Positions 25,901 through 43,290 are shown, numbered from the whole stretch's first letter. The stretch is DNA of 63,447 nt, filler included, from Choristocarpus tenellus KU-1152 (GCA_964200185.2; 11 parts of 11 records of this genome joined end to end with filler, not necessarily neighbours in it); one strand, 5' to 3'. Notes: generated by a model not told the origin, from the letters alone. Numbers and translations: made by a program.

Positions 25901-28900
25901 TCACATCACCCAATATTTTATCACAGGAAGAATTACATCCTCGCCATTCATTGTACCTCTAACATCCAGAAATAGGAATCTTCGCTCCTTGGCCACCACT
26001 GCGCTATGCTCTTGCCAATAATTGTGCCCACAATCACTCTGACTCTCTTGTCTGAGATGAAGTGCAGCTTCAGCTTGTTTCCACAAGTGAACAACGGTCT
26101 GCTCCATCTTTCAAGTTTCAATTGGATGTTTTGTTAAGGATTGAGTGACATGATTGTCAGTGAAAAAGATAAGATGTGTCTCCACCACAACAACAATACA
26201 ATTGAGTTTCTTGGTCAACCTTTACGCTCACCTTCACGACATGCACAAATACATCAGTATGGCCATGCACTCTATCTCCTGCAATTGCACTCACGTATTG
26301 ACTAGAAACAATGTATTACTGTGTGGGAATTGACAAGCTCAGGAGTACTTTGTGCAGCACATTTTTCTCCCCATGAGAATTCTTACCTTCACAGGTCCAA
26401 CTTGTCCACCACCTTTTGGTGAGATGTGCAGGTCTCTTTGCCACTCAGCCCACAAAAGAGAGGCATTATTTGCCTGGGTCGTCACTCCCATCGATACACT
26501 TGCCAGAACAACTCCCTTTCTCCCTGTCCCTGTGTCTCTGCATTGTCGTCTCCATTGCCCATTTTGCCATAAATCCCTCCTCCTTCCTCGACACTCTGAA
26601 CCAGGAGAGGCAATGGCCACACTGGTTGATTTAACACCAAATCGTGCCAAGATGAGACTCAAGAGATAACCGAGTGAAGGTTCCTTCTTCCCACCTGCCA
26701 CTGCTGTCACCTCTTCCACACCCCATTCCGTGAAGCCATGGGGGATGGCATGTACAGGCCCACCAGTGCACTGGTCAAATGTGGTGGAAACACAAGCTGT
26801 AGGGGGGTTGGGAACTGAATGTATGGGCACAGCCTGCCACCCTTTGCTCCACCAAGACGGATTTAGCCACCAATTGCTGGCCTCACTCCTTCCAAGAATT
26901 GGGTGGAAGATTTTCACCAACTCTGTGACCATTAGACCTGCCACAGCTGCTCGACCTACACTCCAGTCATAGCCCCGGGAGTCCCATATTCCTCCAATGC
27001 CATCTGCCTCAACCCCACTTCCTTCATCTGAGGCTGATGCCTCTGGTCTCACCACATCCTGTTCACCCATACTCCCCACCCTTGATGCGTTCACAAGTTC
27101 AGTCCTGCGTTCTTCAATTTCCCCTAGTCCTCCATGAGTACTGCAGCTGAGGCAGCACGTCTGGCCAGGGATGACGACCTGCGGGTTGATGTTTCACTGG
27201 ATGTCTGTATGGATTTTGATTGCATTGTCAGCATTGTGCTGAATGTGAACTGAGGCATGCCTTTCATCATCGGAAGTTCCCTAACTATACAAATCAAGGC
27301 GAACCCCCCAAAGTAAATGGCTGTTTCATGCTATGTGTACAAACGATTGCATTATGTTGGGCATGATGGTACATTTTTATCTCCCACGGCATACACCCTC
27401 CGTTGCCATCAAAAAAAGCTATTTTTTTTTTCAGATTACCACTTTTCCTGTCGTCAGTTATCTATTTCGGAAATACCCACCTTCCTTTACCCTCCTACGA
27501 GTGAAAGTATCTTAGAGGGTACGAGTTTTGACCTGTTTGTCCATTTGGGGTTTGGCTTCCCATGGGCTTTTTAATACATTTTCCTTCTCCAAAATGTTTC
27601 GGTGTGGGTAAAATGTGTATGTTATTAAAAGGTGTGTCCAGAACATCGACATTGACACTTCCTAACACACACAATTGCCAAAATTACATCAAAATTGCAA
27701 CATTGGACTTCGGCCCCCAAATGGACACGGCTGTACCCTCTAAGATACTTTGGCTCCTACCCATTCCATTAATTCCCCATTCCCTGAGCCCAACCATGAG
27801 GAAAATCCATATATGTTGACTACTAACAAGTACTCAATTGTGCTACTACACCAGGTCACTACCACCACAGTCCTCCTTCCTCAGGCGTGACCATTTTCCC
27901 CTCCCGTTCTTGTATATATATTTCTCTCTCTCTCTCTCTATATATATACCCTCTTTTCACCTGTGTTCCTTTCAGTCTGTTCTTCCCCACACATCTAACC
28001 AAATGTCACGACAAAATAGTTTCAACCTTTTGTCAATCTCTCAATGAATGACACTACTGAGTGGTACTTCTTCACCTGTTTCTTCACCATGGCTACATAA
28101 GTGTTTGTAAACACTTTATTTCGTGAGGCAGGAGGCTATCCCTGAGATATATTCAGGTTCTACACTTAGCTGCTGTGCCTCAAGTGCAGTGTCTGGTAGA
28201 GACCAGGGTCACAATGCCCACCTGCAGCGGGTTGACATTCCCCATTTTCCATTGACGACAACCACTTGTAGTGTGATATCTGTGGCACCTTCATGCCAGT
28301 CATTGAGATACTCTACACTCGTTGTGTACATACATCTTGTACCTTCATTAGTCACTTTTACCACAGAATATTCTTTCAAAACATGACTTAGAAGCAACCA
28401 TAAAATCTTGCTAATGCAGAAGGGACTGTAAAAAAAGGGATGCTGATTGATAGTTCAATTTTGAAACGCCACATCTTGTTCTGTTCTACTCACCTCCACT
28501 CCTCCTCCACCCTCTCCAGTCCCACCAGCCCAACCCCACACCAGGGGCTTCTTGTGCAACACACATTTGTGGTTGAGGAATCTAAGTAGCTCCTCATTGC
28601 CTTTCTTCCCATATCCATCGTCCCGCCCCATGCAAACTACCACTGCATCCACCCCTTCCCAGAGATCGGGATCATGGTCAAAGCACCTGGCACAACCCTC
28701 GAAGGATTGCACACAGAACCCAGGATCAACTCCAATGCCGGTCTGGACCACTGATAACCCCTTCATCAGACTCGAAGCCAAGTTCTGCTCTCCATATGCA
28801 AGGGATACTGGGTAGCGTTTTTCAAGTAATGGAAAGAGGTAGTTTATTGCAGCTATCGACGCACGCATTTACACCACACAACATGGTTGTCAGCCAGCTG

Positions 28901-31818
28901 AGTAGGAGTTTTTTAAAATGGAAGCCAGGGCCACTGGGTTGTTCTGTTCCACTTCAACAGTGTGGAAATTCTGTGGACTATCACAATAAACGGTAATAAT
29001 TGCTTACTGTTGTGAAGGTTAGGGTTAGGGGCTTACAGTAGGGGGAAATTAAGAATAATTTGGATGCCTTCCTTGTCTTGGCATGCATTTTATCGCCCTG
29101 TATGTTGAGGTGCTTGAGAGCCAAAAAATCATGGCCATTGCCGCGGTAGGTATGTGGTAGACATTGGGATGCTGTCGTACATTATTGGAGTATATATTTT
29201 CAAAAACAGGCCAACCCTGCAACATTGCCGGATCGCCAATTTCTCTTCCATTATCCTCAATGTCTAGGTGCAGGTTAATATTGGGGTGCTTCCCTGTGTT
29301 GTTGGAGAATACATTTTTGTGGGCAAGTAGCCCCTTTGCAACTTTTCAGATGTTACAAATACCTTATCTCATAAGCCCAACATACAAGTGCAGAAAAGCT
29401 GTACCTCTGAAATTGGGAGAACCGTTCTCCCTATCCACTACTCAAGAGGTGTCAATCAACTACCCAGGTGTAACAAGAAATGGATAGTGGAGGCAAGCAC
29501 TACTGTTGTGGTGATTAATCCTCTCAGACATACTCTACTCTATTCAGTGAATCACCTGGTCAGCTCAACTCATGCTCGGCTCACCCCTTTTGCTGGAAAG
29601 CCCCCCACAGTTTCCTAAGCCGCTGGGTCTCCTTGGGCAAAACACACTATTGTATGGGAATGATGCTGGTGCCGGGTTAATGTGGTTGCAGTCCATTGCT
29701 ATCAAGCGGCCCTGAGGTCCAATGCATGCACCCATTGCAGCCAGGCAACGGGCTACATCTTGCCCCAGTGCGTCACACCCAATGAGTGCGATCTTTGCAG
29801 ACTTGACCTTACTTGCCAGTGACAATCCCAACCACGCATGAAGAGTATCTCTACCTGTGTTTGGTTTGCAAATCAACATTGAACAGTCTTCAGCGATTGC
29901 ATTTTTTTCTTCTGTATACAGAGGAACGGCCCACCAATTAAGTAATTAATTTCTTGGTGAGATCAACTTCCCAGTTTATCAATGTTCAATGACTCAAAGT
30001 TGTGGCTGACTTCCTCACTCACCTAAGGTGTCCTCCCTGTCGTAAAAGCATGGCCATCTGTTGATCTCAGAGTCCCCCATCTCCAGCCCCTGTATCCCAT
30101 ACCCCCTCGCAGGCCAGACATCAATGTGATACCACTGACCTCCAGTTTGTGGTTGCTGTTGCAAAGACTCAGAGTCAGACTCTATGCGAACTGTATTGTG
30201 TCCAACTATCCAACAATTCACCTCTGCTGCTGCCAATCCTCCAAGTTGGAAGGCCACAGGAGGGAAATTCAGTCGGGCAAGAGCACACACCCTGTAGTAG
30301 AGGATCTTGTCAACAGGTTGTGGCTCCAATGTATAGTCTCTTGGCACCTGTTAGAAGGGTAGGTAGGACTGGGATCACAACTTGGGACTAGAGGCTCTAT
30401 CGGTAGCAATAGAGATAGAAAGGGTATGCAACCCATCCTTGGTCGAAATTTGGTATTTGCAACGAGATCTACTTCCTTTTTGCTGGCAGTTCCTGGGATG
30501 AACTTTAGAGTGTATGCTGTAGGAGGGAGCAGTAACATCTCACTCTGAATTGGGGTGTGGGTTACTGGAGCCTTATCAACTACTGTGGATGATGTGACAG
30601 TTGCCTGCATTAATTCATGTGTTGGCCCATCCACACAACCCACATTTTAAATATATATTCTTCCCGAATTCCCCTCACGTTTCGAGTTGCCTCCATGAAC
30701 TCTTCACCCAGACGCATAACCTCCTCTGCATGATTTCTGTTGAGGGTCAGGGGTGGGTGACCATGTTCCTGGAAGAACATGTGCAGGGCTTGCATGCACA
30801 CGTGTAATTGCACCTTTCTCTTTCCTAGTTCAAGCCTGTCCGTTGGGTAGCCACGAAGACCTGTACAGTCCTCCCCAACGTGATGTATATCCCCTGAACA
30901 ATCAAACATGAAGTTTGGTTTGAGAATGTTTTCCCTCAGGCTTCTCTTGTGCCCAATGTCTCTGAAGAGTCGACCAACTGCGCCCCTAGTTTCCACCAGA
31001 AAAAAAGCACAGTCCACCGCTCTGCTCTGCCAGAGTATCATTAAGTCATGGCATCCTGCACATAGTAAGTTTTTAGTAAAGACAGGGATTATTGACTGAG
31101 CTAATCATAATGTTGTCTACCTCCTTGTAAAATATATTTCTGCATTGCTTGGGCCTCTCAACCTCGAGACACACCTATCTATCTAGGGAGCTCATTGAAA
31201 GATGCCAAACACATTTTATATCGCTGGATGCTTTGTTCATGACTCATAATCCCTTTCAAGCAGTGTATCACTCCCACTTCAGAGCAAATCATACATGTGT
31301 AATATATGAATATACTGAACTATCGTTATGCACACTATATTGTTCAGCATACTGTTCAATAATTTGATTAACGCACTATGACACATAATATCATGTAGAG
31401 GGTAGATAGTTCTCAGTATAGAAAAAAAAGCAGTGCAGTCAGACAAGACTCGCATGTGTCGAAGCATACTCACATGTTCGTTGAAAGCAATGGCTTGGGC
31501 TATCGGCGGGTCTGTCATAATGATCGCTGCAAAACCTTCCTCCACGACTTTCGCAGAACCCAGGGGAGACAATATTTTAACGTTCCCCCTCTTTGTGTTC
31601 TTAAGCTTCATTGACAGTTCTTGGGCCCTTGTCTTCTTACCAGTAGTACCCTCAACACGTGAGAGGGAGCTCATTCCCCTCCATCTATCAGTCGCTGCCG
31701 TATCATCTGAGAGAGTGAGACAGAATCTTTCCGTCACAGCGAGCGCAAGCGTCAGCTCAACTCCTGCTGGTCCCAAACCAACGACAAGCACAGCGGGTCG
31801 TTCACCAGACCCAACCAT
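25901..31818 (-). CDS. Divergent UBA1-like ubiquitin-activating E1-family protein (probable pseudo-enzyme)
   Basis: Exons 31818-31474, 31026-30679, 30347-30023, 29854-29585, a possible small exon near 29294-29220, about 28800-28494, 27178-26387, 26107-25901. UBA1-colinear motifs: VLVVGLGPAGVE, ETRGAVGRLFRDIG, QLHVCMQALHMF, GGLAAAEV...QWYHID, KIALIGCDALG, WEGVDAVV...CVLHKKPLV, VVIPGQT, AAVAGLMVTELVK, FTEW, GEDVILPVIKY near the stop. Confidence 0.82.
27499..27756. mobile_element. MITE, long family (258 bp), in an intron of the E1-like gene
   Basis: TIRs GAGTGAAAGTATCTTAGAGGGTAC...GTACCCTCTAAGATACTTTGGCTC; TSD CTAC/CTAC. Confidence 0.93.
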
Positions 31819-32430
31819 TTGTGCTGATTTGGTAGGTGTTATATAAGTGTCCTCTTGTACTTTGCATGCATAGGTGCCCGCGCTTCGAAGAGGGTTAACT
31901 ATAACCCCAACACAATCCTCTCACAACTCCAATCAAGCGATAAGTTTCAAGTAACAAGTTTGAGCGAAAACACGGCACATCGCCCTCTATCAGTAGTCAC
32001 ACAAATGATTTTCTGTAGTGATGAAATATTTTATCGTACAGCGTCTCGGTTATGAAACAACAATACAGCTGTACAACTTTCGAGTTGCGCTCTGACCAAC
32101 GCTGCGCTACATTACGGGTAGCGGCCGATGAGCAAATATTGTCCTAACTTGATGGGTTACTTACTATACTATTCCAATCTACATATCTACCACTACTCTA
32201 CATTTGGGAGGGAACGTTACACAGACGAGGGAATATCTGGACATCCAAATTGTCTCCAACAAAACCCACGAAAATCTACCTATCCCAATTCATGAGACTC
32301 TCGGTAAAATTCCGCCCTCCTTTTCAACCCAACATCCAAACTCGCCATAGAGCGCTGAATCGTCCTCCCTTGTCTTGAACTGATAAGTGGCAGGAGTGGT
32401 ACCATTGGGTGTTAGTTGCCCTTGTACACT
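31819..32430. promoter_or_regulatory. Putative bidirectional promoter region
   Basis: 612-bp interval between divergent ATGs (31818 minus, 32431 plus) on one contig. No specific motif identified. Confidence 0.5.
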
Positions 32431-35400
32431 ATGCCGACACAAGAGGTCGAGATGAAAGTCAATAGCACCATGGACAATGATGATTCCGAGGATGAAGATG
32501 AGATTGCCTACGGAACAATGGCCAGATTCGTCCCCACACTTGTGCTGGAAAGACTGAGGGACGTTGGAGAAGCTTCAATGGTGGCAAAGAGCGCAGGCGG
32601 CGGTGAAGCTATACCTGACAGAGCGAATAAACCACATGTGAGGACAAAAGACAGCAATAGATTCCGTGATGAATACCTTTATGTGGTGGTAAGGTTTATC
32701 GAAGGTGTGAGTGAATGCCTTCATGAACTGTCGCTGATCCTTGCTGGGTTCCTACTTGCAGATGCACGAGTTGGATGCTGTCGTTATGATGGTGGACGTT
32801 TCTGGTTTCTCCAGTATGTGCGAAAGCTTTGCCCTGGGGCTTCATACTGGACCGACGGACAGACTGCACGGGCAGAAAAATAAGGTAGATCTACAACTGG
32901 AGGGGACAAGATCGAACGGATCACTCCATGGAGATCATGTCCTTTGGCGGAGTTGGACCCGATACTAAACTGTGCCCCCTAAAATACCTCCACATCATGT
33001 ATCTAAGTAAACCTCACCCTTGCGATATCTTAGTATTGTCGCTCTCGGAAATTTCCGGACCGGTTATGCTCGATTCACAGGCAACACCGGACGTGCAGGC
33101 TACACGAAGCCGCCGTAACACCGTCGCATCGGCTGGTGCTGTCACATCCCTGTACCGCCTGGCAAACGAGAGGGAGAAGAAGGGGTTTGGTGCCGAGGGC
33201 GTCAGGGATGCGCTTAATCAAAAGCTTGGCGCTCTTATCTCCAAGGTCAGCACGCGCAGGCTTGGTTGTCGATGGGGGAAGCCGCGTGTAGATGTCAACA
33301 GGCCTGTCTGGCCTGGTGGCAATCGGTCTGTGCGTGTTGGTAGTGCGTGGCTGGGACCGTTGAGGAATCAAATTGACTGCTGATATTTAATGGCCTCAAA
33401 GGTTGCCTTTCTAAATTTGACTGAATGTTGAGCACTTGTTGGCCTGGCTTCTAGGTGAACGTCGTGCAATCCGTTATGAACTGTTTTTATGTAAATGCAC
33501 CCTAATTTAAGGCTTTATACGCGAGATCCGGCAATTCTCTGTGTACAAGTTACCATATTTTTAAAGCACCACCCAAGTTCCAACCTGGAATTTTTCCCCA
33601 TGTACCCCTTGTATAGGTTGAAGAGTATGGAGGTGATGTGTTGCGTATAGCTGGAGATGCACTCATTGTGCTATTCCATCAAGGCAAGGCTGGGGTTGAT
33701 CCATGGGTGAGAAATTGTAACAATTGAGAGCTGCATCAGGAGCTTGGACGGATGCAGTGGTGTTGACGGATGCAGTGTCGATGTTGGTGCTGGTATTGTT
33801 AGTTGGTGAGGGAGTGTGTAAGGTTTAACTGTTCTTGCATTGCACCTATTGTATTGATGATGCCTACCCCTTCTGTGTGAAACCCTCCATTTTTTACAGG
33901 AGTTAACAGAACTGTGCCTGACTTGCTCCCGGTGCGGGTGGACCTGTGCAAGATCTATTGATCCTACTGGGGGTGATAATGACGAGGGACTCTCGGTCCA
34001 TGTCGGAATTGGCTGTGGAAAGGTGTGATGTGATTATTCCATTTGTTGTGTTGAAAATATAGTACACTGAGAATGGTTTGGCAACTGTGGGAGCTAGAGC
34101 TAGGTGGGAATGGGTTTCTTTGCTGTGGGGTGCTTGTGTGTTGCCAGGTGCATCCAGTAAGGAGTCCCTTTACGCCCCGAGATGACCCTCTGTGTGGATC
34201 CTTTTCTTGTTGAAAGCGCTATTTCTTTTTCCAGTCATGTATGCATTAGCAATCATTTCTTGATACATACTTTTCTCCCTCCATTGTATTGGTGGCACAC
34301 TCTTGGCAATATCTTGTTCAATGAAATCACAACTGACCATATTTTCAAGAGGAGGTTAAGAATACCCACATGTGCCAACCTCGCCATGTCTTGCTTCCCT
34401 TGAGTTTTGTGTGCGGTATATATTTTTTCCCTCGGTTCGTGCATTGAGTCCAATTGTTTGTTGAATTATTTCATGTAGTACCCAAGTATCATATCGTGGG
34501 AACGCATTTCCTGTTTTCCTGACTTTTTTTTTAATGCTCTTCTAACGCTGCCATCTACTTCTCCTTGTTGTTCATGGTCCAAACAATTTGCTGCAATCTT
34601 GGAGGATTGTGAGTTTTATGTCATGCACCCATTCCGAACTGCGGCCTTTCTTGCTCAACTCCGCATCTTGTGCTGGTCGCTCTGAACGTGATCCCCTGGG
34701 TGCGATGTGTATTTTGTGTATATGATAAATATGTCCACAATGAACATTGTAGTATTTTCTACCTCCGGAATTGGTCACGGGATCTATGGTAAGCAATGTG
34801 AAATTTGTTAGGATTCGATGTGGAGTTGTCAAGTGCTTGAGAAACAGGAAATGGTAGATGTTTGCCGTACCAAGAATGGAGCCTTGCCTCAATAACAGCT
34901 GGTGTGGTGTAGTGAGCGTTGATAGCTTGGGTGCTTTGGAGGGGACAAGATCTCTTGATATTTGGAGGTACATGTCTCTTCCATGCACAGCACACGATGC
35001 ATGTAACGCAGGATACTTCTGGGTGGGAGTGGCATGAACGATATATGCTGATCCCTTAACCAAACAACCGCCCAACTGACAATCCGTACCCACTACCAGG
35101 TTGACTGTTTTAATGTTGGAAGTGACAAGCTGGGTTGGCAGCTGGTGGTTAGTGGTGAACTTTTCAAGAAGCAGGTGCATGCAAACCTACATACGAGTTT
35201 TCGGGGAGGCCTTCTTGTTACAGTTTCATTTCACTCCCTTGCATTGCGGAATGAACATACCTGCCCTATCAAAATGAACTTGGTTGCACACCAGGACCCA
35301 AGCATTTTGCGATGGGGATTTTTTTCTGCGCGATGACCCACTTTAGGTACAAACTAAAAAAAGTACATGGCACAGTGCTACAGCGCCCACGCACACATGT

Positions 35401-35807
35401 GCAGTTAGTCGTATCACATTTTTTTGTTAATATAGTTTTTATTATGACTATTATGACTATATTGACTGTACGTGTAAGGACTGTTGAGTAAAATGAGCCC
35501 GAGGGGATTCCTGTCCATGTGCATGTAGATTTGTGCTCCATCTTATGCCATGGAAGTATCCAAAGCGGTGTTTCCATCTATAGATGGAATGGAGGTACTG
35601 AGAGATCTGTGGATAAGGACTACCCCTCAGAGAAGCACCATCTGATAGGGCAGGAATGTCCTCTATCGACCCTTCCCTTTGACCATTTTTGAGACTTCAA
35701 CCACATGCATGCTTGTAGGATGAGGACAACTGCCCCCACCGTTTTTATTCTCAACAGGTTTAACCTTATGGGGACTGTTCCTGCCCCATCATGCATGTCA
35801 CCTGACC

Positions 35808-35843
<36 letters not shown>

Positions 35844-36688
35844 CACTGACCTCCACTCCTGGCACATACCATGCCCCACCACTTCACATTGTTATCCATT
35901 GTGTATCATTGACACGGTTGAGATTGTTAGGTGGCAAAGGCATTAGATGCAGCCTCTGCAGGAGAGGTGGTAGTATCAGGCGAGGTCTGGCAGCGCTTGG
36001 CTGGGACGGGGTGGGGTTCAAAGCCAATTGGTGAAAGGTTGTACGGTCTCCGGGTACTGGACTGGGATCCGGTCGATAATACACTTGACAGGGAAGGTGC
36101 GCTTTGTAGGTTGGGTATTGTGGGGGGGGTGGGGGGGCAAAAAGTGCTTGTTTTTTGTAGAAAAAATGAAAGAGAAGAAGGGAACATTGGTGTGTTGACC
36201 ACTGTATGTACCTGCTACCACTGTTGATTGCTTCATGTACATTCACTGGTTTAAGACTGAGCTGGGAGGGGGAAAGGATTTGCACAAGGAGGAGGGGACG
36301 TGGACTGACCTTGCCAGTTTTTTACGTCTTGGTTTGTTGTCTTACGTTCTTGGTGATGTTGTTCTTGCCCGCGTGTCAACTCTCCCCCCTCTTGCCTTCT
36401 CTGCCTTGATGCCTATGCTGTGAGAGCAGCGAATGTGCAGGCAGTGCCCGCTCATGGTAATGAGCTGTTCGTAGCACTGAACGACACTGAGCTGAATCCA
36501 AATCTCGAACGAATTTCTCGGGCTCGTGCCAGCCACTCTGTGCCAGGAGCCATGGTGTCGACGAAGGAAGAGGGCCCTTGGGGGGGCATGCCTTCAAGGA
36601 GGTCGTTTCAACGATCAGGGTCGTGTGACTCCACTTTTTTTGGAAATAAAACTCAAATTGGCACCAGGTAAGCGAGATAAATAGATAG

Positions 36689-36750
<62 letters not shown>

Positions 36751-39052
36751 CGTGCAGTGACTGTGATGTGTGTGATCTGGCGCAGAACCCGCTATTGCCT
36801 CTCCCCTCCATGCTCACATCGTTGCTGGATTGCATGCCTTGTTCTGTACGTATCCTCCTTAGTTGTTACCATACTCATGCTTTCATTTGTTTGTGCATAC
36901 TGCATACTGTGCTTCTGAGAAGGATCTGCAGTCAAAAGATCAGAGTCTTGGGGTACTGGCTTACTCAGTGACAGCTTTTTTGTTCGTGGTGTTCCTAGTT
37001 TGATCCTGTGCTTTTGGGATGGACCGTCGACTCTGCAGAATGAATTCCAAGCACTCCTTGATGTCTGTAGCAAAGTGTTTAAACTCTTGATTTGGGATGA
37101 CATATGTACACGTGAAGTTCTTGTGTAATACTTTAAACTGTATTAACAGTGACCCGGGCTCGCAGAGGGTGTTAGGGGTCTGCGATGTCAAGTACAAATA
37201 CGGGGATTGGTGTAGTGTGCTTTGTTTTGGAGTACTGTACAGTCAGGAGGAGAGCCAGGCAGTGCCAAACTAGAACTCGTGGGAAGTCTATGACGGGCAC
37301 CACATTGTGGGGGACTGCTCACTGGATGGGAGGGGTGTGTGTGGATCAAACAACAACAATTGTTAGTTCTTAATTTTTGCTCGTGGCAGGTCAATTAGGA
37401 GGATCGTACAAGGGGTCTCAATGCTGTGTGGTTTTTGATGTACCAGTAAAAACCCTAACGCTAACCTAACCCTAACCTAGCCCTAACCCTAACCCTTCAG
37501 CCTATTAGTAGTATAGAATATCCAAGATAATGAGAATATCGTACTTGTCCTCAAGAGTATGCCACCACATTCCACTGGCTCTTAATCTCTTGATGAATGT
37601 TTAGTATCTAGCTAGTGATGTTTCTGATGATGCATGATTTGCTGAAGAGGAGTGCTGATGCAGGGCTTTCTAAAACATCCACTACTAGACTTTTTAACCT
37701 GGGCACAATGTGTGTGTGTATGAAGTGGAAATGGAGAGGGAGAGCTTAGCAGTGATGCAAGCCGTGTCATAGTGCTAAAACGGGATGCCCAGGCCTTCCC
37801 ATGTTGTTTCCTAACCACTCCTGGGCCTTGCTATCCCTGATACACGATAAGATAGGTATTTTTTATTGTTCCATGTTGCAACCAGGCTACCAAGTTTCGA
37901 GAAGGGCCTTATCCAAACCAAAGGAACCTATTACATGCTCTTCCCCCACCCCCCCCTTCACTCTTGTGCTGTTGAGGTCAGGTGGTGCCCATCAAGGAGG
38001 AGGGTGTCTCTGTTAGAGGAAGTTGATACTGGGGTGATGACTATGCTTTCGAGCAAGGTTGGGCGTGCCCTGAAAGGCTACTGCCCCCAGCCAGTTAGGG
38101 AAGGATTGGTGAGAGAGTCTTTATGCTTTTGTCCCCTGCCATTCTTCCTCTACGCCGCCCCCGCTCCTTTGTGTTGTGTTGTGTTGTGTTGTGTTGTGTT
38201 GTACAGTACTTGCCCCCCAAACTGGTGCGGAGCTATCTCTACACCGACTAAGATATGTTTCTTTGAACAGTCTCTTGTGAGGTCTGAGACATGCTGTCTC
38301 TCTCTTTTACATCAGTGCAATACATCGTGCATCTACAATGCCCTTGCCCCCTGCCCCCACCCCTTTCCTCCACACGTTGTGTCCTTGATTCTTTTCCCCC
38401 TTTATCTCTTTCATACCTTACAACCCTTCCACCCTTGGTGTGTATTGGTGTATATTCTTATGGTGGTGCCATGTGCATGCCGAGGGTCATACTTCGAGCA
38501 TCTTCCCCAAGTTATGCATGGCAGTATGACCTAACACACCATTTTGCACTACATTGCCTCATACAAGTCTTTTCCACCTTCGCTTATTTTCTTGATCTGT
38601 CTCTGCATGTACAATGAAAGGTGGCGGAGCGCCTGGGTCTTCTAGCAGAGCTGCAGCGCGTGGCTGTAATGTTTGTGGGGATGTCCTTTGAGGGCCCAAC
38701 CTCTGAGAGTCCCTTGCTCCCGTGGACAGGGAGTGGGCAGGGGTCAATGGGGATGGGGCCTGTGGAGGAGGGGAATGGTCCAGGACCAATTCTTGGACAA
38801 GGATTGGAGAAGTGGCCAGGCGATGTACAGAGGGTGGTAGAAGGACAGGGGCATGGAGAGGAGCAGGGGGAACAGGAGCGCCGAGGACAGGGGTTGAGCG
38901 CATATCAGGGACTGGACCTGTCTTTGCTGCAGGACAGCTTTGCTTTCCTTCAGAGCATAGTTGCAGGCCATGAGGGTGTGATCAAGGAGCTGTCTGTGGA
39001 TGACAAGGGCATGGTGAAAACCTGGGAATCTCGAATTGGGGGGAGGAAGGCA

Positions 39053-39106
<54 letters not shown>

Positions 39107-40289
39107 GATGAGAGAGGGGGTATGGCTGCAGTGTGATGTTCAGGGAGACTGTGTAAGCGATGGTGAAAAGGGCTTTTCATCATGTTCTTTGTATTGGATC
39201 AATGAGAGCCTGTAGTACATGGTCAATTTCCGGTGCAGCCTCTTCTCTTGATGAACTGCCCACGTCATCATTCCTGCAACCCCCCCCCGTTTCCTCCGAT
39301 ACAATCGTACTTGCAACGCACTATAGCTACATCCATACCCTCACCCCTCCCATTTCGCTTTGATCATGACCCTGCTTGTGAATGTGGGTAGGTATTGGTG
39401 GTCGGCTTTGGACTATCCCCTCACGTTGGTCACCTCCCGGCAGCGAGGGCTGTTCTGTGCGCGCTTGAGTGTACTGACCGCTTGAAGCTTCGTGGGCTGG
39501 CAGACTGCACGGCAGGTGTGGCAACGGGCCCTGTCTTCTGTGGTTCCTTGGGGTCGGACATCAGGCAAGAGGGATTGAAATGTGCTATCCTAGTGAACAC
39601 AGGAGTGGGAATATAGATAAGAGTTGTGGGCTTTCAATTTGCTGCAGAAACGAGGTTAGTGCTTTATGCATGCATTTGTTTGGGCATGGGTCATGGATTT
39701 TTCGATGTCCTAGACCCCCAGTTTTACCGCAAGTGTTACCCAGCATCCCATCTTTTATCCATCCCCTTGTTGTCCTAATCTATTTCATACGACCGTATGC
39801 CCCCCTTCCCTGAGCTGCCTGACCCTACCCATCCATGCAACCCATCTGAATTCATTTTTTTTTTCCTCTCCACCCCACCATCCCAATTCTGAAGTGCCCC
39901 GCCCCTTCCCCAACTGACATACAAGAATGCTTTGTTTGCACCATCAATTTGTGTCCGTGTATATGTGTGTGTGTCTGTTTGTGTGTCTGTTTGTGTGTCT
40001 GTTTGTGTGTATGTATGTATGTATGTATGTATGTATGTATGTATGTATGTATGTATGTATGTATGTATGAGTGAAAGTATCTTATTAAGAGAGAGTACGA
40101 GTTTTGCCCTGTTTGTCCGTTAGGGCCTTGACTTTCCATGGCATTTTCCAACTCCAAAATTTTTCTGAGTAGGTAAAATGTACATGTTGTGTAATGGTGT
40201 GTCTGGAACAAGGATATTGACACTTCATAACAATCACGATAACCAAAATTACATCAGAATTGCAACATTGGATTATGTGTGTGTATGGC

Positions 40290-40324
<35 letters not shown>

Positions 40325-43290
40325 CCATTCCCTCTTTCACCTCTACACCAGGCGTGAGTTTGCAATGGTATCGGACACTGTCAATCTGGCCATGCGGCTA
40401 ATGAGCGCTCGCAAGAAGGGGAAACTCCAGCCCAAGGACCTGGTGGTGGCAGCGGCCTCTGCCACGAGGAGGAGGATGAGAACAGCAAGCGAAACGAGTA
40501 GTCAAGGTCAGAGAGGTTGGAGAGGTTGGAGAGGTTGGAGAGGTCAGATAGGTCAGATAGGTTGGAGAGGTTGGAGAGGTTGGAGAGGTCAGAGAGGTTG
40601 GAGAGGTCAGAGAGGTTGGAGAGGTCAGAGAGGTTGGAGAGGTTGGAGAGGTTGGAGAGGTCAGATAGGTTGGAGAGGTCAGAGAGGTTGCAGAGGAACA
40701 CAAGCGATTCTGTCTTGAGAAAGCTATCGACGGTGGATACAGAGGCTTGCTTGTTTTTTTATTTTTATTTTTATTAGTGGGTATATTTTTCTTCTTCTTT
40801 TGTGTCATCGAGCTGTGACATTCGATTTGGCGGTTGGTTATTCGTTTGTTTTGTTTGTGTTTAGTTTGTTCTATTTGCTCTTTCTGTGATTCTGCGTGTA
40901 TATTCTTTTGCACATATGTAACTATATATATAAATATATTCGTATATGTACACGTGGTGTGTTTTTTCTCCTTACCGAGTTTGTTTAAGTTGAACTTGAA
41001 CTTGAACTTGTAGTGAGGTTTATTTTCACAGGACAAACAGCGATGCACTACACTGGTACGTAGATGGTTGAGGATTTGATGACGAGCTGTGGCAATAGGA
41101 AATCGATAAGTGCTGAAAGTTTCAATGGGCTTAGTGATGATTTGTCACTGACATTTGAAATGGTGCAATGATTCTTGTTAGTACTGTGGTTTTATCCAGG
41201 AGCAACAGATGCTGCAAAGGCCTTGAGTAGATTGCACGATTTTTTTGTTTATTTGGGGACTTGAGTCTCCCTATTTCTAGTTGAATCTTTTGTCCTTAAC
41301 CATACAGTAGAGTACTTAATGCGATGCCCAGATCATGGCGTATTGAAGGGGGTATAAATTTGCACCATGGACCTGTACATTGGTTGAAACAGATTCCTCT
41401 GGCATCCAGGTATTTCCAGGTAATGAAGCTTTTTTGTGCTCCTGTCACGGTTACTGCAATTTGGGTGTTTTTGGAGAGGGTAACTGTGTATTTGCTACTG
41501 CAAGTGATACTATTTTTTTTTTCTAGGATCATGAATCTCTCAAGTTTTTTTTTTTTCAGAGTAGAACGAACCTGCCCCTTTGTAGTGTGATCTATCAATA
41601 GGAAAATTGCTGATTTTGGGGAGAAGACAGGTAGGAAGTTACTGTGGGGGTTAATTTTAGTGATGTTTGTGTTTGGGGGAAGGCACTAGGATGCACTTGG
41701 CTATGCTCACATCCCTGATGGTGACATAAATTATGTTGTAAAGCAACCCTTGCCAGGGCTTGCCTTGCCACAATCTTCACACCTCTCATTACTCCCCTCC
41801 CCATTCATGAATTTTTGGCAAGGTAGCTACAATCCTCTTCCCCCCCTCCTCATTTCTCACCCTTTCTGGTGCTTTGAGTAATGCAGGGAGCACACAGGAC
41901 AGCATGCTGGATCTATTCCCAACAACAGCCTTGGGGTCAGCCAGGGCTGGGAGGTCGTTGGCAGGGGTACAAGAAGGGACCACGGAGGTTGAGCATGATA
42001 GAGTGATAGGAGTTGTGGGTTGCACTGGAGGTGGGTTTTCCACACCAGTGCATCGCCGCAGTCACTGTAGAAGGGGTGAGGCTCGCATTCAGCACCAGGG
42101 TGCCTATGCTTCAATGCTGGCAAGTGTGAGATTGGGTGCGTTTGGTAGGGGGGAGAGGTCAAAAGAGAGTGTCAGTTACAGCCCCAGAAAGGTCACCACA
42201 CCACTTTCTGCCACAGCTCCTCAAAAGGTGCTATCTTCAAGTCGCGGATTGGGGGCTGAGGATTTTAGCAGAGGAAATTCTCTTGACACTGATTACATTG
42301 ATCCATGGGAACCATGGTGGGAAGACTTCAGCTGTAAGGTGGTGTTGGATACAGAAACTCATGCCGAGGCCCGTCTGTGTTCACAACTTGTTTTCTTGGA
42401 GCTGAAGGAAATTAAGGTTTGTTTCAATCGACGTTGGTAACCCATATGTCCCAATGCTCCTTCCCCCTGCATGGGATTGGGCATCAAAAGTTGCAACAAA
42501 TGGCCCACTTGACCCCTGACTACTTTTTTTCTTGTGTCACTGGCTCCACACCTAAACCTCTTGTTTGCTCCAATTCTGTTGAGTCCCTCAAAGGCCAACC
42601 TCAACGAGGGTTAGATGTAATGTTTTGCTATTGGTGGAGATTGTGGTGTTTTTAACAAATTATTTAAAAATATTAAAAATTTGATTTCTACGAAAAAAAC
42701 CCCAAAATATCGTTTATACGTAAAAAAATGTTTTTAACAAATTATTTAAAAATATTTATGCCAATTTCTAGTAACTTTAAGTTCTTCATTTTTTGGTGCT
42801 GGACTCGCTACTGTTGGTATTGTCCTCAGCATGAGGGACCTCCAATCCATAGCAACTTCAGTGACTGCTTCCACTGAAGTAAATGTTTTCAATCACCACT
42901 CCATCTGCAGCATGACATTTTTTGCCGCCTCCTCAACCAGTAAACCCCATCATATGTTTCACTAGGTGAAGGGTAAGAAGGAGGCAGTACAGTTGTATGC
43001 CCCAGGTCTATCTGAGGACCTTGAAACAGGATCAGTAGGAGCAACGGAGGAGTTACCCAACCACAACGTAAGAGGAGGAGAACATGGGCCATTGGGGTGG
43101 CAAGAAAAGACAGTTGTCACAGAGGCAGAGTCAGCAGCAATAGTGACAGAGGCGTCTTTCTTGGATAAGTCAGCTCGTTACAGGATGGTCATGCCAGTTG
43201 CCCTGGAGGACTGGAGTTTGAAGGCAAAAAGTGTCCCAGTGAACCATGGGATGGAGATAAGGACTGGAAGTGAGCTAGACAACTTACCAG
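32431..43290 (+). CDS. Soluble adenylyl cyclase (ADCY10)-like protein with tandem class III nucleotidyl cyclase domains; probably continues beyond the contig
   Basis: Phase-consistent exons: 32431-32637, 32762-32884, 33081-33245, 33617-33706, 33900-34022, 35100-35174, 35931-36096, about 36427-36667, 37982-38108, 38621-39013, 39392-39564, 40352-40506, 41887-42416, 42966-about 43290. Motifs: MVDVSGF, GAEGV, GGDVLRIAGDAL, VHVGIGCG, GEVVVSGEVW, AELQRVAVMFV, VDDKG, GVATGPVFCGSLG, REFAMVSDTVNLAMRLM, VKGK. Confidence 0.9.
36677..36750. repeat. (GATA)n/(GA)n microsatellite, intronic
   Basis: Directly visible. Confidence 0.95.
37450..37495. repeat. Degenerate interstitial (CCCTAA)n telomere-like tract
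   Basis: aaccctaacgctaacctaaccctaacctagccctaaccctaacc. Confidence 0.75.
39965..40068. repeat. (GTGTGTCTGTTT)n and (GTAT)n simple repeats
   Basis: Directly visible; abuts a MITE end. Confidence 0.95.
40069..40274. mobile_element. MITE, long family, right end missing
   Basis: Starts GAGTGAAAGTATCTTA; colinear with 27499-27707. Confidence 0.85.
40506..40695 (+). repeat. 9-bp minisatellite (GGTCAGAGA / GGTTGGAGA / GGTCAGATA), about 21 units
   Basis: Directly visible; begins at a predicted splice donor of the cyclase gene. Confidence 0.95.

Follow-up and report, generated by a model that had tools for sequence, protein, structure and literature searches.

Introduction

The closest described relatives of the protein treated here are UBA1, UBA6 and UBA7, ubiquitin-activating (E1) enzymes that carry two adenylation-type halves in one chain, an inactive adenylation domain (IAD) followed by an active adenylation domain (AAD). 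The C-terminal domain of E1s is the ubiquitin-fold domain at which the ubiquitin-conjugating (E2) enzymes dock. In human UBA1, Cys632 within the second half-domain of the catalytic cysteine (SCCH) forms the thioester, Asp576 coordinates Mg2+, its loss crippling the binding of both ATP-Mg and ubiquitin, and the first half-domain of the catalytic cysteine (FCCH) and the four-helix bundle contact ubiquitin (PMC12355090). In this report, we describe an E1-like gene of the brown alga Choristocarpus tenellus KU-1152 (GCA_964200185.2), which is located on the minus strand at positions 25901-31818 of the window, i.e. of the whole stretch of 63,447 nucleotides that was analysed and in which parts of 11 records of the genome are joined with filler. 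Its product shares with UBA1, UBA6 and UBA7 the order of the two halves, a four-helix bundle inserted in the first of them, the FxxGGLxAxE helix of the IAD, the way in which the second half begins and a C-terminal domain at the position of the ubiquitin-fold domain, and these enzymes are its best sequence and fold matches. It differs from them in that the FCCH, the SCCH, the catalytic cysteine, the NxxRQ motif and the aspartate of the ALDN motif are missing, in that the crossover carries a C-x-x-C motif, which UBA1 is not known to have, and in that the C-terminal half is unrecognised by sequence searches of Pfam and PDB. We favour, with a probability of about 0.6, the reading that the brown-algal protein is a selected pseudo-E1, presumably derived from UBA1, which binds without catalysis.

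Three further groups of proteins are relevant for comparison. The minimal enzymes UBA5, ATG7, MOCS3, MoeB, ThiF and MccB resemble the brown-algal protein in their ThiF fold and in a crossover that is short and carries no cysteine domain, but they are homodimers whose single, active domain has intact ATP-Mg residues and a second cysteine pair. In the brown-algal protein, two halves are fused into a pseudo-dimer with a four-helix bundle, the ATP-Mg residues are gone from the corresponding half and a second cysteine pair is not conserved. Of the cysteines of the zinc site, the first pair is common to the SUMO and NEDD8 E1s, UBA5 and MoeB, and the catalytic cysteine of ATG7 lies on the crossover loop (PMC12355090). 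SAE1 (AOS1), NAE1 (APPBP1) and the IAD of UBA1 itself are likewise adenylation folds without catalysis that serve as structural partners, and in SAE1 a loop is all that is left of the FCCH (PMC12355090). These, however, are always paired with an active, SCCH-bearing half, whereas the partner half of the brown-algal protein, which is part of the same chain, has degenerated as well. Pseudo-enzymes are known for E2s, deubiquitinases and kinases; among the pseudo-E2s, the UEV proteins (Mms2, Uev1a, TSG101) have lost the catalytic cysteine and are kept as modules that bind ubiquitin or a partner. The UEV proteins offer an analogy only, as they have a different fold and act at a different step of the cascade. 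No description was found in the literature of a whole E1 turned non-catalytic, nor of a UBA1-type chain lacking both cysteine half-domains. The brown-algal protein is a member of the E1 superfamily whose architecture and probable non-catalytic status we have not found described.

Gene model

The gene has an intact reading frame from the ATG at 31818 to the stop codon at 25901-25903, and the ends given in the initial annotation were right, as were its motif positions when re-checked against the window, with the exception of one spacing discussed below. Seven exons with GT-AG borders at all junctions were rebuilt, comprising 2511 nt (836 codons plus stop), and the surrounding DNA is eukaryotic, with about 46% G+C and spliceosomal introns. 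The Ectocarpus orthologue is collinear with all seven exon blocks (tblastn). The exons of the window were searched singly, and full-length work was done on the database proteins P0001 (CAM9208050.1, 617 amino acids, C. tenellus) and P0005 (Ectocarpus). The exons are as follows:

31474-31818, minus strand: exon 1, 115 codons from the ATG, beginning of the N-terminal Rossmann half, which corresponds to the IAD of UBA1; donor GTGAGT; 35% identity to the Ectocarpus protein in tblastn (E 9e-17)
30679-31026, minus strand: exon 2, 116 codons, end of the first IAD part (ETRGAVGRLFRDIG), linker and four-helix bundle; junctions CAG/ and /GTGAGG
30023-30347, minus strand: exon 3, second IAD part (FQLGGLAAAEV helix) and a variable insert, reaching the start of the second Rossmann half; donor G/GTGAGT, phase 1; block supported by tblastn with the Ectocarpus protein
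29646-29848, minus strand: exon 4, start of the second (AAD-like) half with GCDALG and MDCN; end FPYNS/GT as in P0001 and placed as in Ectocarpus; use of another acceptor, 6 nt upstream (29854), would also keep the frame
28494-28784, minus strand: exon 5, middle of the AAD-like half; 49% identity to Ectocarpus in tblastn (E 1e-22)
26387-27178, minus strand: exon 6, 264 codons in one continuous frame, crossover, 64-residue linker, last AAD helix, NPP motif and first part of the presumed ubiquitin-fold domain
25901-26107, minus strand: exon 7, 68 codons plus stop, C-terminal end with the conserved RFLFLDVRG...LPVIKYWV; acceptor AAG/; in tblastn 40% identity to the Ectocarpus C-terminus and 51% to the orthologous Logan contig L005

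A first model of exons 4 and 5 with about 45 extra residues was dropped, since the deposited junctions fit the lengths and boundary positions of the orthologues. In an exhaustive HMMER search, CAM9208050.1 was 100% identical to the exon-6 product. This deposited protein begins at MQALHMFF within exon 2, so that exon 1 and 79 codons of exon 2, about 190 N-terminal residues, are absent from it, and it removes 26512-26592 (81 nt, donor GTCGAG) from exon 6 as an intron, which we consider doubtful. The removal costs the Cys-Arg of a P-G-S-E-C-R motif that is kept in all other species; on the other hand, it brings the loop length nearer to that of the other species. The cysteine of this motif could be a further metal ligand, in Choristocarpus only if the 81-nt stretch stays unspliced.

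Loss of the FCCH and SCCH domains

The four-helix bundle is recognised by profile: Pfam E1_4HB matches exon 2 at 30700-30822 with 40.4 bits (cut-off 25, E 3e-10), and the Ectocarpus sequence scores 40.8 bits. In the same exon, the IAD strand ETRGAVGRLFRDIG passes directly into RSLRENILKPNF, which we take to be the counterpart of the UBA1 segment that follows the FCCH. In the phmmer alignment with human UBA1, residues 14-36 of exon 2 correspond to 194-216 and residues 74-114 to 331-371, so that 37 residues remain at the FCCH site against 114 in the human enzyme. This shortened stretch and the lack of an E1_FCCH match bear out the proposal that the FCCH is missing between FRDIG (30952-30966) and LHVCMQAL (30784-30807), where the linker measures 48 residues (30808-30951) and not the 35-40 previously estimated. 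The family profile aligns to yeast Uba1 at 84-146 and 255-463, the latter match (E 3e-13) covering the exon 3 stretch. Most brown algae except Choristocarpus carry in exon 2 a low-complexity, partly conserved insert of 90-110 residues (L001-L004, e.g. L003:3030-3539; P0027-P0030, P0037-P0039) with the elements T-P-T-P-P, L-R-P, R-E-S and S-G-L; it is located between S-R-S-L-R-E-A-L-L-x-P and the four-helix bundle, past the former FCCH site and not at that site.

At the second site, exon 6 starts at 27178 with VVIPGQTCCLSC and is opened by the crossover segment VVIPGQTCCLSCSTHGG with the conserved motif C-x-x-C-S-x-H-G-G at 27128-27154. The last AAD helix, AAVAGLMVTELVK (26912-26950), is read in the same frame as the crossover, and the SCCH is replaced by a linker of 64 residues (26951-27142) with 13 Asp/Glu, 12 Gly and no Cys, in line with the some 60 acidic and glycine-rich residues without a PxCT motif that had been noticed there. 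A short, cysteine-poor linker follows the crossover in every orthologue, and neither E1_FCCH nor UBA_E1_SCCH of Pfam matched any member of the family. Both deletion sites lie inside one uninterrupted exon each, with the flanking UBA1-like motifs in frame, and therefore no hidden exon can supply either domain; the ten longest minus-strand open reading frames (ORFs) of the introns gave no match to an E1 domain.

In the N-terminal half, exon 1 encodes GLGPAG (31762-31779) followed by LSDD, WR and MTDP. All exon-1 ORFs stop at AFNEH, followed by a splice donor, and the orthologous products that end in this way (12 of 12) share the invariant residues G14, G16, G19, D38, D39, W46 and R47. The resulting pattern GxGxxG...DD...WR...D-P differs from that of the canonical IADs in the exon-4 search alignments, which read GxxGxG instead. 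Against PDB, the N-terminal profile gave only generic, non-significant Rossmann matches (E 0.01 or worse).

The nucleotide site of the second half

The second half is identified by a match of Pfam ThiF to P0001 that spans exons 5 and 6 (40.7 bits, cut-off 28.1) and by the alignment of exon 4 to the AAD start of UBA7 (415-474) and Schizosaccharomyces pombe Uba1 (392-470). In this alignment, GCDALG (29763-29780) faces the GAGAVG and GAGAIG of the two enzymes, nothing stands opposite NLNRQ, and no NxxRQ follows the MDCN segment. The position of ALDN, the bearer of the Mg-binding aspartate, is occupied in exon 5 by CMGR (28623-28634), as placed by motif spacing and the coordinates of the Pfam ThiF profile and not by residue-level structural alignment. 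The three changes proposed at the outset, i.e. GxGxxG to GCDALG, absence of SNLNRQ and ALDN to CMGR, are thus seen, and the last two are common to the orthologues: NxxRQ is absent in all of them, and their ALDN site reads C-[AMV]-[GN]-R (CAGR, CANR, CVGR). The second-half GxGxxG itself is GCGRLG in the Ectocarpales, GCDALG in Choristocarpus and GCNRFG in L005; because its second glycine drifts between G, D and N from lineage to lineage, this P-loop is free of constraint. Since the counterparts of Asp576 and NxxRQ as well as the SCCH cysteine are lost, the canonical two-step chemistry would be unavailable to the Choristocarpus protein, and these residue losses make the loss of canonical E1 catalysis quite probable.

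The crossover motif

The C-x-x-C, the histidine and the GG of the crossover motif are invariant in the nine sequences compared. In the second-half profile, P-G-R-T-S-C-L-V-C aligns with the zinc motif P-G-K-T-G-C-Y-E-C of MccB, a weak match (E 0.007) that nevertheless agrees with the likeness initially seen between CCLSC and the C-x-x-C of UBA2, UBA3 and MoeB. UBA1 is not known to have a C-x-x-C in the crossover. The second cysteine pair of the four-cysteine zinc site is not conserved in the family, P-D-P-P standing at its place.

The C-terminal domain and structure prediction

Of the UBA1 domain order that had been assigned to the product, the N-terminal half, the four-helix bundle and the second, ThiF-type half were recovered, whereas the C-terminal ubiquitin fold was not recognised: Pfam and PDB profile searches of the C-terminal part gave no match. 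Language-model look-alikes of P0001 405-617 and P0005 770-964, which are 43% identical, were led by clusters carrying E2_bind, UAE_UbL and E1_UFD, with scores of 0.81-0.85 that lie below the trust level of 0.9. The AlphaFold model has a helix at LGYLLSLILA, then a strand, and RFLFLDVRG...LPVIKYWV forms two more strands at the end; this predicted secondary structure fits a beta-grasp fold with inserts. The C-terminal domain is a likely candidate for an E1 ubiquitin-fold domain.

For P0001, AlphaFold (39-row alignment) gave a mean predicted local distance difference test (pLDDT) score of 48, with confident values (70-85) in the Rossmann core of the second half alone; the prediction for the full-length Ectocarpus protein (13-row alignment) reached a pLDDT of 31 and was unusable. 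The top 29 Foldseek matches of the model were all Uba1, UBA1, UBA6 or UBA7 (E about 6e-8 to 1e-6), and the nearest Atlas shapes belonged to UBA1-type and ThiF clusters. VIA-align superimposed model residues 1-332 on yeast Uba1 278-930 and residues 143-320 on 413-913 with Z scores of 12.4-12.8, while the fold matches to MoeB, UBA5 and the SUMO and NEDD8 E1s had Z scores of 10.6-11.1. The aligned residues of Uba1 jump from about 583 to about 913 and so pass over the SCCH, the model being weak at the jump itself. Sequence and structural alignment agree on the loss of the SCCH, given that exon 6 is continuous, that the alignment jumps from 583 to 913 and that UBA_E1_SCCH is not matched.

Distribution, age and selection

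In an exhaustive search of 1.84 billion representative proteins, the exon-6 product matched only seven clusters at 50% identity, and all named clusters were brown algal (Choristocarpus, Ectocarpus, Discosporangium). Word-based searches added sequences of E. fasciculatus, Ectocarpus sp. 4, CCAP 1310/34, Hapterophycus and one EukProt model as well as about 25 ORFs of the size of an exon in assemblies of Logan, JGI and ENA; such searches for canonical UBA1 sequences returned members of the family only. The Logan contig L005 holds a complete orthologue, and in four Ectocarpus genes the coding sequence is divided into seven exons at the positions that are used in the window. Orthology of the window gene and the Ectocarpus genes is indicated by the divergently oriented neighbour, which is collinear in both: in tblastx, window 32515-43022 (plus strand) is collinear with 9176-1352 (minus strand) of the Ectocarpus sp. 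6 contig L001.

The seven exons, the FCCH and SCCH deletions and the losses of NxxRQ and of the ALDN aspartate are common to both sides of the deepest brown-algal split, which separates Choristocarpus and Discosporangium from the Ectocarpales. We assume that Choristocarpus belongs to the first-diverging branch together with Discosporangium; the NCBI taxonomy files it under Sphacelariales, unlike the placement used here for the age of the gene. Given the former placement, the distribution of its sequences implies that the gene is at least as old as the crown brown algae. The Discosporangiales are treated as the first brown-algal branch, and the class is dated to roughly 450 million years ago, in the Phaeoexplorer preprint (10.1101/2024.02.19.579948).

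The initial proposal that the gene is selected and not a decaying duplicate holds, as the orthologues keep both the exons and the losses, the ratio of nonsynonymous to synonymous substitution rates (dN/dS) is below 1 and exon indels are in frame. Over about 950 codons, NG86 dN/dS values among the Ectocarpus species were 0.33-0.49 (e.g. dN 0.087 and dS 0.261 for E. sp. 12 versus E. fasciculatus), and the ratios of the corresponding proportions (pN/pS) were 0.37-0.42, with Fisher p values of 4e-21 to 1e-7. Within the protein, dN/dS was about 0.10 in the four-helix bundle and the second IAD part, again among Ectocarpus species, and 0.7-1.7 in the lineage-specific inserts. Identity amounted to 88.3% in exons and 79.3% in introns, and indels were multiples of three in 4 of 4 cases in exons versus 6 of 42 in introns. 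The nine sequences spanning the deepest split agree in 48 residues of the C-terminal half, among them P..T.C..C..HGG, R..VAG, NW, P.PP, GFTEWG.EE, ARFGV, P.SE and LW.EW. By these comparisons of coding sequence, the gene is under purifying selection.

Interpretation

The most constrained parts of the protein are the four-helix bundle and the adjoining IAD helix, followed by the C-x-x-C-S-x-H-G-G crossover and the C-terminal domain. Because the most constrained parts are those that contact ubiquitin and E2 in genuine E1s, the role of a holder that does not charge its ligands is the most economical one. As a pseudo-E1, the protein would hold a ubiquitin-like protein and/or an E2 without charging and would act as an adaptor, a sequestering factor or a regulator of a conjugation pathway, while the C-x-x-C-(H) element would be a structural metal site holding the shortened crossover together; we infer from this a role as scaffold or decoy. 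Several observations weigh against this reading. The GxGxxG of the second half is intact in the Ectocarpales (GCGRLG), a dinucleotide-binding fingerprint is invariant in the N-terminal half, and an invariant cysteine pair occupies the position of the catalytic cysteine in non-canonical E1s such as ATG7. Moreover, the ubiquitin-fold identity of the C-terminus comes without a Pfam or PDB sequence match and with a mean AlphaFold pLDDT of 48, and dN/dS values of 0.33-0.49 are fairly relaxed for a core factor.

The first three of these observations would fit a non-canonical enzyme in the manner of UBA5, ATG7, MoeB or ThiF, which would need no separate cysteine domain, would use a crossover cysteine as nucleophile (as ATG7 does; PMC12355090) or as metal ligand, and would have a divergent nucleotide site, possibly in the N-terminal half. 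The invariance of the crossover C-x-x-C, H and GG in nine sequences, the invariant N-terminal GxGxxG, DD, WR and D-P in place of the GxxGxG of canonical IADs and the GCGRLG retained in the second half of the Ectocarpales speak for such an enzyme. However, no orthologue has the Mg-binding aspartate or the NxxRQ arginine in its second half, the P-loop of that half is unconstrained (its second glycine being G, D or N), the second cysteine pair of the E1 zinc site is missing, and the N-terminal profile finds nothing beyond generic Rossmann matches with E values of 0.01 or worse; furthermore, the four-helix bundle of UBA1 is said to block the binding of ubiquitin to the IAD (PMC12355090). We regard this alternative as unlikely. 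A more radical version, a rewired enzyme specific to brown algae in which the nucleotide site was kept or rebuilt in the N-terminal half, the crossover C-x-x-C-S-x-H-G-G became a new catalytic or metal centre and the substrate is perhaps not ubiquitin, appears quite improbable on the sequences at hand.

Two further explanations would deprive the missing domains of functional meaning. The protein might be the product of a decaying UBA1 duplicate whose frame is open by chance, in agreement with its very strong divergence from UBA1, with the exon-6 product matching its own family alone among the 1.84 billion representative proteins, and with the near-neutral dN/dS of 0.7-1.7 in the lineage-specific low-complexity inserts. 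Yet seven GT-AG exons with an intact frame occur in Choristocarpus, four Ectocarpus species and L005, pN is smaller than pS with p values down to 4e-21, all indels in exons keep the frame, unlike most of those in introns, the 48 residues of the C-terminal half are invariant across the deepest split, and the orthologues, being 42-55% identical, are not copies of one sequence, so that decay is barely credible. Alternatively, the domains could be absent from the gene model only, the FCCH and SCCH being encoded by overlooked or alternatively spliced exons; the N-terminally short CAM9208050.1 with its doubtful 81-nt intron illustrates that models of this gene can be faulty. But both deletion sites are inside continuous exons with UBA1-like flanks in frame, the ten longest minus-strand intron ORFs lack a match to an E1 domain, and independently predicted proteins or raw ORFs of many assemblies show the same junctions, which makes an artefact of this kind very improbable.

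Neighbouring genes and other features of the window

The E1-like gene is arranged head-to-head with a large, multi-exon gene on the opposite strand, whose start lies about 600-700 bp from the ATG of the E1-like gene; in Ectocarpus, the corresponding gap is 285 bp. The layout is kept in Ectocarpus, and the two genes seem to share a bidirectional promoter that has been conserved across brown algae. The following features were recorded outside the exons of the E1-like gene:

31819-32515: intergenic region, short, head-to-head with the divergent neighbour
32416-43022, plus strand: neighbour gene
39050-39136, plus strand: ORF encoding a glycine run, inside or beside the neighbour gene
40260-40720: short tandem repeats with long repeat ORFs on both strands (WRGWRGQ and LSNLSD), probably microsatellite-like intron sequence
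29017-29030, minus strand: telomere-like CCCTAACCCTAACC motif within intron 4 of the E1-like gene

The neighbour was considered as a class III nucleotide cyclase because of the look of VDVSGFS, GGDVLRIAGDAL and VHVGIGCG, but its exon pieces gave no Pfam match and the Ectocarpus product has no Pfam record, so that this assignment is not claimed. Downstream of the E1-like gene of Ectocarpus sp. 6 follows a PHM7_cyt (CSC1/OSCA-type) gene at L001:18325-25382 (plus strand). The EukProt model g10192.t1 (P0020, 1668 amino acids) combines the E1-like gene with this PHM7_cyt neighbour into a chimera in which most of exon 6 is skipped.

Biological implications

The family is so far confined to one algal class and is known here from sequence alone. 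A practical consequence concerns annotation: the member of Ectocarpus siliculosus bears the name 'ubiquitin-activating enzyme E1 1', which the losses described above mark as a mis-annotation. As a natural experiment, the family also bears on the question of which parts of the E1 scaffold are able to stand alone. If it is true that its members bind a ubiquitin-like protein or an E2 without charging, they would represent a new mode of control over a conjugation cascade at its first step, and this in a lineage with independently evolved complex multicellularity.

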